A stretch of DNA of 64,000 nucleotides from the NCBI GenBank assembly GCA_963924565.1, contig OZ004610.1:29512001-29576000 (forward strand), in the 5' to 3' direction. Origin of the DNA: Ascidiella aspersa (lineage: Eukaryota). Below are positions 26,689 through 52,802 of this stretch, in pieces; position 1 is the first letter of the stretch, and every line of letters starts with the position of its first letter. Both the position numbers and the translations under genes were made by a program. The notes beneath the pieces were generated by a model. It did not search any database, was not told the origin of the DNA, and worked only from the letters and a program-made list of their open reading frames with translations.

Positions 26689-36593
<9,905 letters not shown>

Positions 36594-39582: not shown

Positions 39583-49367
<9,785 letters not shown>

Positions 49368-51081: not shown

Positions 51082-52305
51082 ATGAAGATTAGTATTTGCT
51101 GCTTGACCTGTTTGATTGGTGACGACAACGAAAAAGATCCTGAAGAGAGTCACCTAATAAGCAATGAACAAGAAAGCGATAAAAGAAAATCGGAATCTCA
51201 AGAAGGTCCAGCTCAAAGTGCAACCAAGTCTGAAGTCCCTGTTAAGAATGATCCTAGTTTGGAAGCGCAGAATTCTGAAAAACTTCGACGCACTGTTGGT
51301 GTATCACGGCGTTACAATGTCAAACCGCAAGGATACAAATTTTCACTAGGGGAAAGCATAGAAGAAACAAGCTTGCTAGTGAAAATTGCAATTAAAATCA
51401 TACCAAGAAGTGGCATGGCAAAAATATACGCAATCGATGCATTCAATGTTTTTTATACAGTTGTAGACAAATCGTCTTTGAATGATAGCGTGGAAGACTG
51501 CCCAGTTGTTCAACTAAGGACTAAGATTATCCCTTCTGATATCAGGGGTCACAGTAAAAAGTATGAAGTAAGTGAGAGCATAACTGGTGCGCTAAAATTC
51601 AGCACTGAATGTCTGCACACCATTTCCCTGCAGGATTTTCAAACGAGTTCAGTTCGTTTGCGCCTGTACCATGTGAATAAGCACCAGAAAGACAGCTTGC
51701 TCGGAGAATATTTACTCGATAATTCCAAGCTTGAACTGGACTACTCTGGAAGCACATCTAATGTTTCCCTTGTTATGCACAGCCCTTCGGAAAAAGATGT
51801 GAAGCCTCCAATGATGTCGAATGTAAGACGTTCAATCAGCAGCAGTTCAAGTGGGTCACAGTCGGTAACCAGGGGTGATTTTAAGAGCACAATTCGAAGG
51901 GCTGACACCAAACCTACTTCTCGCGGCGCGTTGCCAAAATTTCAGGAATCCAGTGGAAACGATGACGACGGTGAAGCAGCGACCGGCAGTGGGGGCAACG
52001 ACTTTCACAAAAGGGTGAAAAAAAAGAAAAAGAGCTTTCTGCAAACTATTCGCAAGCCAAATGCGGAAAAGGAACTTTCACAAGAAAGCACAGAAGAGCC
52101 GGGCACACCCCAAAAAGTGGACAAGGATACTGCTTTAGAGTGGCTGAGGAAGGGAGGCATTGAACGCTCGGAAAAGGTCAGCGAACTGCATCAGGCCACT
52201 GAGGAAATGGAACAAACTGCCGGGAATTTTAGTGCTGTGAGTGTACGCCTTCGCGAGAAATATGAAAAAAAGAACAAGAAGAAACGCTCGCTGGAATCCA
52301 ATTAG
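51082..52305 (+). CDS. Putative 407-aa C2-domain plus C-terminal R-SNARE-motif protein (tomosyn/amisyn-like tail, no transmembrane segment)
   Basis: 1.2-kb uninterrupted ORF in AT-rich DNA, first ATG 51082 (MKISICCLTCLIG). SSVRLRLYHVNKHQKDSLLGEYLLDNSKL resembles SYT14/16-type C2. IERSEKVSELHQATEEMEQTAGNFSAVSVRLREKYEKK resembles synaptobrevin/tomosyn coiled coil. Confidence 0.8.
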   Translation: MKISICCLTCLIGDDNEKDPEESHLISNEQESDKRKSESQEGPAQSATKSEVPVKNDPSLEAQNSEKLRRTVGVSRRYNVKPQGYKFSLGESIEETSLLVKIAIKIIPRSGMAKIYAIDAFNVFYTVVDKSSLNDSVEDCPVVQLRTKIIPSDIRGHSKKYEVSESITGALKFSTECLHTISLQDFQTSSVRLRLYHVNKHQKDSLLGEYLLDNSKLELDYSGSTSNVSLVMHSPSEKDVKPPMMSNVRRSISSSSSGSQSVTRGDFKSTIRRADTKPTSRGALPKFQESSGNDDDGEAATGSGGNDFHKRVKKKKKSFLQTIRKPNAEKELSQESTEEPGTPQKVDKDTALEWLRKGGIERSEKVSELHQATEEMEQTAGNFSAVSVRLREKYEKKNKKKRSLESN

Positions 52306-52735
52306 GTATTTATGGTTTATACGTACGGTGTGTACCGCTGCAATATATGTGTAGTTTTTAAATTGACTGCTTTGTTGTAAAGATATGTGCAATGTATGCT
52401 ACGTTAAAAGCATTTAACAGTTATTAAACACATGCTTTGTTTTTGTGGTAGCGTATCAAGAATTAACACTAAGTTTATTTCTTTTATGTAATTCTATATC
52501 AGCATTTTTCAAATAGGTCTCTAAATGAAATTCTCTTTATTAACTCGTATGTTGTTTTTGTTTATATAATGAATTCAAAGTATTAAAATGCCACAGCATG
52601 AGAAAGACATTTCATGAAAATGTACATAAGTAAGTTATGTCTATACACAGGAAAGCAATCGTTTTCCATATTTTACTTCATCAGTATGTATATTTATAAA
52701 TGTGTTGACAAATGCCACAAAGAGATGTAACATTT

Positions 52736-52736
<1 letters not shown>

Positions 52737-52766
<30 letters not shown>

Positions 52767-52802
52767 CATATATATATGTGTGTATATACATATATTATAT
52801 GT
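52737..52802. repeat. Compound (CA)n/(TA)n microsatellite
   Basis: ACACACACAC...ATATATATAC...GTGTGTATATACATAT run. Confidence 0.9.

Follow-up and report, generated by a model that had tools for sequence, protein, structure and literature searches.

The window analysed here, a 64,000-nucleotide stretch of the genome of the ascidian Ascidiella aspersa, carries on its forward strand a gene (51082..52305) encoding a 407-residue protein in which a C2 domain is joined to a C-terminal helix of R-SNARE type. The protein belongs to a real and conserved family that has no name, and its modules follow one another in a fixed order: an N-terminal cysteine cluster, an ExxxL[LI] motif, a C2 domain of type-I fold, a disordered Ser-rich linker and the C-terminal helix. 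As far as sequence and structural models can indicate function, the family may constitute, next to tomosyn and amisyn, a third kind of R-SNARE regulator that does not drive fusion. We judge the chances to be evenly balanced that the protein is a membrane-tethered, R-SNARE-like regulator that is unable to drive fusion and is apparently restricted to tunicates. The features on which this reading is built are given below, with coordinates in the window.

51082..52305, + strand: complete single-exon coding sequence, 407 residues plus TAG stop (open reading frame list, end-to-end orthologue alignment)
51097..51111, + strand: N-terminal Cys cluster C6, C7, C10, a candidate S-palmitoylation anchor (alignment)
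51121..51360, + strand: acidic disordered linker 1, residues 14-93 (pLDDT, the predicted local distance difference test, below 50; mean identity 23%)
51142..51159, + strand: acidic dileucine-type motif E21-x-x-x-L25-I26, a candidate clathrin-adaptor sorting signal (alignment)
51361..51831, + strand: C2 domain of type-I (synaptotagmin-like) topology, residues 94-250 (AlphaFold2, Foldseek, VIA-align)
51511..51561, + strand: basic β3-β4 segment, the most conserved C2 stretch and a candidate phosphoinositide-binding groove (alignment)
51832..52116, + strand: Ser-rich disordered linker 2, residues 251-345 (pLDDT below 50; mean identity 22%)
52117..52263, + strand: R-SNARE-type helix, residues 346-394 (Pfam, PDB profile search, layer table, AlphaFold2)
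52165..52167, + strand: zero-layer Arg codon, R362 (aligned to the Arg of VAMP2 LERDQK)
52264..52302, + strand: polybasic C-terminal tail, six K/R in 13 residues (composition, hydropathy)

The gene and its family

The reading frame runs uninterrupted from its first ATG, with an in-frame stop about 23 codons 5′ of it. Because the product matches ascidian proteins end to end, the coding sequence is complete in one exon; the single open reading frame claimed in an earlier note on this DNA, made from the sequence alone, is an intact gene with full-length orthologues. With the orthologue from Phallusia mammillata (411 residues) the end-to-end identity is 58-60%. Ciona intestinalis LOC100175316 (411 residues, 41-46% identity) aligns from the Met to the last residue, as does the orthologue from Clavelina lepadiformis. 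The gene is single copy, a search of its own 308.6-Mb, 75-contig assembly, in which the window is G000:C4:29512001-29576000, having matched only the gene itself. Mean identity to the window protein among 14 full-length relatives is 63% in residues 1-13, 45% in the C2 domain and 48% in the helix, and drops to 22-23% in both linkers. Identity thus tracks the domains, indicating that the protein is under selection and is not a chance open reading frame. A single exon would suit a non-functional sequence, whether a chance frame or a decaying retrocopy; against this, the 407-residue frame is intact, start and stop are conserved as far as Ciona and Clavelina, conservation follows the domains and a named orthologue exists in Phallusia, so that we find such an origin scarcely credible.

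The family comprises 18 proteins at E<=0.001, found by an exhaustive phmmer pass over 1.84 billion cluster representatives that was run without a word index and without a length window. A profile built from these 18 sequences and searched against a 5.8-billion set recovered no relatives beyond the family. All named members are ascidian proteins and, judged from these, the C2/R-SNARE family appears to be confined to tunicates. Such confinement limits generality, yet makes for a clean case of lineage-specific exocytic innovation. Protein Atlas gave no usable match to the whole protein. The earlier note knew of no described protein with a C2 plus R-SNARE architecture, and the family is nameless; in the literature searched we found no paper on Ciona LOC100175316 or on this architecture.

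A truncated R-SNARE-type helix

AlphaFold2, run on a 9-sequence alignment, predicts a single long helix at residues 348-406 with pLDDT 83-89. When the 18-sequence family profile was searched against 177,635 PDB sequences, the first 16 places were all taken by R-SNAREs, in the order tomosyn (1URQ_A, E 1.2e-4), VAMP2 (2e-4), VAMP4, VAMP8, Snc1 and Nyv1, and nothing else rose above noise. The Pfam Synaptobrevin profile (PF00957, gathering threshold 26.4 bits) matches residues 360-400 of the window protein with an E value of 4.6e-5 and 23.6 bits, under the cut-off. All nine family members scanned match the profile, and all of them score below the cut-off too. In a six-frame search of the genome the window gene scores 26.4 bits, at the cut-off, and the genome's true tomosyn scores 31.3 bits. 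The HMMER alignments pair R362 with the Arg of the LERDQK segment of VAMP2, which is Arg56 of the rat protein, the zero layer. Projecting the VAMP2 layers onto the 18 family sequences gives the following assignment (layer; window protein; family).

-3; L352; hydrophobic
-2; L355; hydrophobic
-1; G359; variable
0; R362; R in 17 of 18 members, Q in one divergent member
+1; V366; V, L or I
+2; L369; L, V or M
+3; T373; T, A or S
+4; M376; M or L
+5; A380; A, invariant
+6; F383; F, L or W
+7; S387; S, T, A or N
+8; L390; L or I

The layer pattern is that of VAMP2, with R at 0, small residues at +3, +5 and +7, Phe at +6 and Leu at +8. Layer +8 of the window protein is followed by a VAMP-like KY juxtamembrane motif; the alignment to VAMP2 ends in the KYWWKN region, of which the family keeps the KY before continuing into the polybasic tail. 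Layers -4 to -7 are not conserved, their positions being occupied by K, S, P, Q or gaps in the disordered region. The motif is therefore incomplete, with 12 of the 16 layers present (-3 to +8 only). On these alignments the helix shares ancestry with brevin-type R-SNARE motifs over their C-terminal three quarters, layers -3 to +8. No transmembrane helix was found in the whole protein, the top 19-residue Kyte-Doolittle mean being 1.05 and lying within a C2 strand. The zero-layer Arg that the earlier note had placed at 52165-52167 is thus the residue aligned to that of VAMP2, and the note was also right that no transmembrane helix follows the motif. Its heptad SNARE segment is indeed of R-SNARE type but is not a full-length motif, since only layers -3 to +8 are conserved. 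We note that the divergent member, P0018 (316 residues, from ENA), has Gln in place of Arg in the zero-layer column and also differs at its N-terminus; it may represent a paralogue, or its gene model may be poor.

It is conceivable that the helix no longer acts as a SNARE. The protein would then be a C2 membrane adaptor, its helix a relic of a synaptobrevin exon that has become a generic coiled coil through which the protein associates with itself or binds a non-SNARE partner. The PF00957 score under the cut-off and the shortened motif are consistent with a relic, and KIBRA, the best neighbour of the C2 domain (see below), is a scaffold protein. A binary complex prediction between the C-terminal 68 residues and a syntaxin-1-type H3 exon (L005:1435-1611) could be counted on the same side; it scored 0.15 against a mark of 0.34, which gives no answer and is evidence neither way. 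The conserved residues are, however, exactly those at SNARE layer positions, the layer-0 Arg included, and the small/large asymmetry from +3 to +7 makes sense only in a heterotetrameric SNARE bundle. That a buried Arg has been kept also argues against a generic coiled coil, and we regard the relic as unlikely.

The earlier note described the motif as tomosyn/amisyn-like. Against sequences from the same genome, the helix scores 31.6 bits with the synaptobrevin exon (37% over 41 residues), 27.3 bits with the C-terminus of tomosyn (35% over 34 residues) and 20.4 bits with the C-terminus of an amisyn-like protein (40% over 25 residues). For scale, tomosyn and the amisyn-like protein score 45.1 bits with one another (49% over 47 residues). 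These pairwise scores point to a separate brevin-type lineage and not to a member of the tomosyn/amisyn pair. The description was therefore too specific: the helix is roughly equally close to synaptobrevin and to tomosyn, and the amisyn-like protein is further away.

The central exon of synaptobrevin (G000:C4:22521344-22521550, + strand; L009:1504-1662) runs from VVDIM (layer -4) to KYWWKNCK and is flanked by an AG acceptor and a GT donor; the transmembrane helix is on a later exon. The span of this exon is the homology region of the family, which fits capture of that exon, and the R-SNARE motif may have been acquired in this way by exon shuffling.

Tomosyn and amisyn-like genes are found elsewhere in the genome. 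The R-SNARE motif of the tomosyn orthologue lies at G000:C4:13688914-13689087 (- strand; L016) in a 1120-residue open frame, and the gene, normally multi-exon, seems to be largely intron-free here. In the amisyn-like gene (G000:C3:27965226-27966046, - strand; L015/L022) one exon matches Sec3-PIP2_bind (PF15277) with 24.8 bits, just under the cut-off. The last exon, about 550 nt downstream, matches Synaptobrevin with 36.6 bits, ends in a stop without a transmembrane helix and shares 49% identity with the tomosyn motif of this genome. Amisyn is termed vertebrate-specific in the title of Kondratiuk 2020, as cited in PMC10670990. Since this genome holds both genes, the window gene represents a third, independent anchor-less R-SNARE architecture, and the earlier claim that it is distinct from tomosyn and amisyn is upheld. 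The possibility that it is the tunicate counterpart of amisyn was considered and ruled out, as the amisyn-like gene is a separate one.

The truncation also bears on what the helix might do. In vitro, a synthetic fragment, synaptobrevin 49-96, is reported to stabilise the ‘delta-N’ acceptor complex and to make fusion faster. The family could likewise be a positive placeholder, one that holds the membrane-proximal half of a syntaxin/SNAP-25 acceptor, leaves the N-terminal nucleation site free and is displaced by synaptobrevin; in this way dead-end 2:1 complexes would be avoided. In 18 of 18 sequences no layer before -3 is conserved, the Pfam and PDB alignments begin at about VAMP2 residue 42-54 and the predicted helix starts at residue 348, all of which agree with such a role. 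The truncation may, however, merely mirror the captured exon, and the full-length motifs of tomosyn and amisyn are inhibitory. We consider the placeholder improbable. The fullest form of the idea would make the protein a natural counterpart of the laboratory fragment ‘Vc / synaptobrevin 49-96’, a palmitoylated, C2-targeted half R-SNARE acting at release sites as a priming chaperone, not as a decoy, that keeps the acceptor fusion-ready, and derived from a central synaptobrevin exon captured in the tunicate lineage; this we hold to be quite doubtful.

Syntaxin-1 H3 and both SNAP-25 motifs are split over exons in this genome. At the syntaxin-1 locus (G000:C8:10429132-10429459, - strand; L004/L006) two adjacent alternative exons encode the C-terminal half of H3 (+1 to +8) and look like a mutually exclusive pair. 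An intron-less, full-length syntaxin of 276 residues with a transmembrane helix is located at G000:C1:36610844-36611674 (+ strand; L002:853-1683); inspected by eye, it has a SNARE motif similar to that of endosomal syntaxin-7/12.

C2 domain, N-terminus and proposed function

In the AlphaFold2 model residues 94-250 form a beta sandwich with pLDDT mostly above 90, and residues 1-93 and 251-345 have pLDDT below 50. Foldseek returned 126 matches in the PDB at E<=0.001, the best 50 of which are all C2 domains; they are led by the C2 domain of KIBRA (E 7.2e-8, target template-modelling score 0.85) and synaptotagmin-1 C2A. In an all-against-all comparison with VIA-align the KIBRA C2 domain again superimposes well (Z 14.7, root-mean-square deviation 1.9 Å, 123/128 residues), as do those of PI3K-C2alpha (Z 13.6), Rabphilin C2A (Z 13.5) and RIM, synaptotagmin IV, Slp4 and synaptotagmin-1 (Z 12.7-13.3). 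The C2 domains of PLC, cPLA2, PKC-epsilon and NEDD4 give Z 8-9, with alignments that begin one strand later. Type-I C2 domains thus score Z 12-14 versus 8-9 for type II, and the strand order is therefore read as type I. By both Foldseek and VIA-align, the predicted model is an eight-stranded C2 beta sandwich. The profiles Pfam C2 (PF00168) and NT-C2 (PF10358) gave no match at E<=10 with the window protein and none at E<=1 with nine members. One database labels the Clavelina orthologue ‘C2 NT-type domain-containing’, and in Protein Atlas the C2 part matched assorted divergent C2 families, all with scores <0.9. The beta-rich domain that had been proposed at about 51373-51786 (residues 98-235) falls inside the modelled sandwich and is a C2 domain by structure comparison. 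The same note was reminded of the Ca2+-independent C2 domains of synaptotagmin-14/16; the closest structures obtained here are the C2 domains of KIBRA and PI3K-C2alpha and those of the rabphilin/synaptotagmin type-I group. Of the outcomes expected from HMMER/Pfam and AlphaFold, the checks suggested at the time, a weak PF00957 match and a C2 fold were obtained, the latter by structure and not by a Pfam C2 match.

The most conserved part of the C2 domain is the basic β3-β4 segment, where Q144, R146, T147, K148, R155, G156, H157 and K160 are invariant or nearly so; R192, R194 and Y196 are likewise among its most conserved residues. Lysine-rich β3-β4 clusters are found in the C2 domains of PKC and synaptotagmin, and the KIBRA and PI3KC2alpha entries that top the fold search are complexes with lipid or inositol hexakisphosphate (IP6). 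By analogy, we infer that the domain binds phosphoinositides through its basic β3-β4 surface. The predicted top loops (122-141 and 214-223) vary more than any other part of the domain, are the richest in gaps and are without a conserved acidic cluster. The YDFD...D segment of loop 3 of synaptotagmin-1 C2A aligns by eye with H, N and S here, positions that vary across the family. The C2 domain is probably calcium-independent.

Every full-length member starts with M-K/R-x-x-C-C-C-x-x-C (family consensus MKIxCCCFTC; MKISICC..C in the window protein). In the 9-sequence alignment C6, C7 and C10 do not vary, and of the 16 N-termini compared 15 retain them. E21 and L25 are also invariant in the nine sequences, and ExxxL[LI] is present in every full-length member. 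N-terminal Cys clusters are typical of S-palmitoylated peripheral membrane proteins, and adaptor complexes classically recognise [DE]xxxL[LI] as a sorting signal. By these marks the protein is probably lipid-anchored by palmitoylation at its N-terminus and adaptor-sorted. The earlier suggestion of a soluble protein is made doubtful by the invariant Cys cluster and the conserved ExxxL[LI], which point instead to a palmitoylated membrane protein. The same note had seen a Ser/Gly-rich linker, and residues 251-345 are indeed predicted to be disordered and are poorly conserved; linker 2 contains one invariant Arg, R272, within a TIRR motif.

These modules suggest how a non-fusing regulator could operate. 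The Cys cluster would be palmitoylated and tether the protein, and the dileucine motif would sort it to a plasma-membrane, endosomal or vesicle pool. The C2 domain, which apparently lacks the canonical calcium-binding aspartate cluster, would steer the protein to acidic, phosphoinositide-rich membrane. There the helix would occupy the position of synaptobrevin on an acceptor of syntaxin plus SNAP-25-type Q-SNAREs. The resulting complex would be non-fusogenic and would compete with synaptobrevin, as the tomosyn and amisyn motifs do. It could not drive fusion because no anchor follows layer +8; some 340 residues separate the proposed anchor from the helix, whose wrong end it adjoins, and zippering could therefore not pull the bilayers together. 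Tomosyn forms a four-helix complex with t-SNAREs which is non-fusogenic for lack of an anchor (PMC8377282), and amisyn consists of a PH domain and an anchor-less coil that competes with synaptobrevin-2 (PMC10670990).

The position of the anchor also bears on the opposite possibility, a fusogenic, lipid-anchored R-SNARE like Ykt6 in which the polybasic tail and the palmitoyl groups transmit force. The layer-0 Arg, the VAMP-like KY motif and the polybasic tail beside the +8 layer speak for such a protein. Two disordered linkers, however, lie between the helix and the proposed covalent anchor at the other end of the protein, trans nucleation would need N-terminal layers that are absent and there is neither a C-terminal Cys nor a CaaX box, which makes fusogenic activity very unlikely.

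Several points weigh against the non-fusing regulator. The match of the window protein to PF00957 stays below the gathering threshold in the protein scan, and the complex prediction with the syntaxin-1-type exon gave no answer. Layer -1 is variable in the family and is Gly in the window protein. Without layers -7 to -4 a full 16-layer bundle is impossible and the affinity may be low. Palmitoylation is read from the sequence, calcium independence comes from a by-eye comparison with synaptotagmin-1 C2A and not from a computed residue alignment, and phosphoinositide binding is argued from the basic surface by analogy.

Positions 1-42000 of the window contain three tandem units of about 14.05 kb that are 94-100% identical, and a fourth, partial copy is inverted at 40248-48759. 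Open reading frames in the units match Pfam Myosin_tail_1 (e.g. 30155-30733, - strand, E 5e-20); positions 1-49400 hold four or more almost identical genes for myosin heavy chain in a cluster, with three copies on the - strand and a single one on the + strand. About 1.7 kb separate the end of the + strand copy from the C2/R-SNARE gene downstream of it, which is on the same strand. The latter was considered as a possible terminal exon of this upstream myosin gene and the idea was ruled out, as the orthologues begin at the same Met. An ATTAAA polyadenylation-type hexamer is located at about 52424, some 120 nt past the stop, and a (CA)n, (TA)n, (TG)n microsatellite occupies 52735-52800 in the 3′ flank. 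Rfam gave no match in the window.

Comparison with known systems

To our knowledge, only two architectures of anchor-less R-SNARE regulators have been described, tomosyn (WD40) and amisyn (PH). If the proposed function is correct, the family adds a third, in which a truncated motif is combined with a sorting motif, with what is probably a palmitoyl anchor and with a C2 domain that probably does not depend on calcium. The combination of a lipid-binding module with a VAMP-like coil would then have evolved repeatedly, and the family would be a natural experiment on the C-terminal half of the R-SNARE motif alone. Ciona is a chordate that lends itself to experiment, its nervous system being simple and its connectome known, and the function is therefore directly testable there.

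The window protein is not a canonical R-SNARE, a tomosyn, an amisyn or a synaptotagmin. Like the window protein, tomosyn (STXBP5) has at its C-terminus an R-SNARE motif whose layer 0 is Arg, and it lacks a transmembrane anchor. Tomosyn, however, carries its full-length motif (Pfam positions 7-66) on a large WD40/Lgl scaffold, whereas the window protein has a Cys cluster, one C2 domain and a motif that starts at layer -3. No Pfam match to a WD40/Lgl double propeller was found in the window protein, and its model has a single C2 sandwich.

Amisyn (STXBP6) is closer in plan, being likewise a small protein in which a linker joins a lipid-binding module to an anchor-less VAMP-like coil. Its PH domain binds phosphatidylinositol 4,5-bisphosphate, PI(4,5)P2, and tethers amisyn transiently to the plasma membrane (PMC10670990). 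This would be a functional parallel to the role proposed for the window C2 domain. The amisyn module is, however, a Sec3-type PH domain, for which the window protein gave no match (PF15277), and amisyn has no Cys cluster, whereas the window protein has both a C2 domain and a Cys cluster.

Synaptobrevin/VAMP2 shares with the window protein its residues at layers 0 to +8 and the juxtamembrane KY; the window protein differs in having neither a transmembrane helix nor layers -7 to -4, and in its 345 additional N-terminal residues, which include the C2 domain. With the type-I C2 domains of KIBRA, synaptotagmin and rabphilin it has fold and topology in common (Z 12.7-14.7), but no detectable sequence similarity. 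Synaptotagmin itself has an N-terminal transmembrane helix and tandem C2A-C2B domains, whereas the window protein has one C2 domain and no transmembrane helix. Ykt6 and SNAP-25 resemble it as SNARE-motif proteins that are held at membranes by acylated cysteines and not by a transmembrane helix. The two differ from it in where these cysteines are placed: Ykt6 has a longin domain and is lipidated at the C-terminus beside its motif and SNAP-25, a Qbc SNARE, has a central Cys cluster, whereas that of the window protein is at the far N-terminus.

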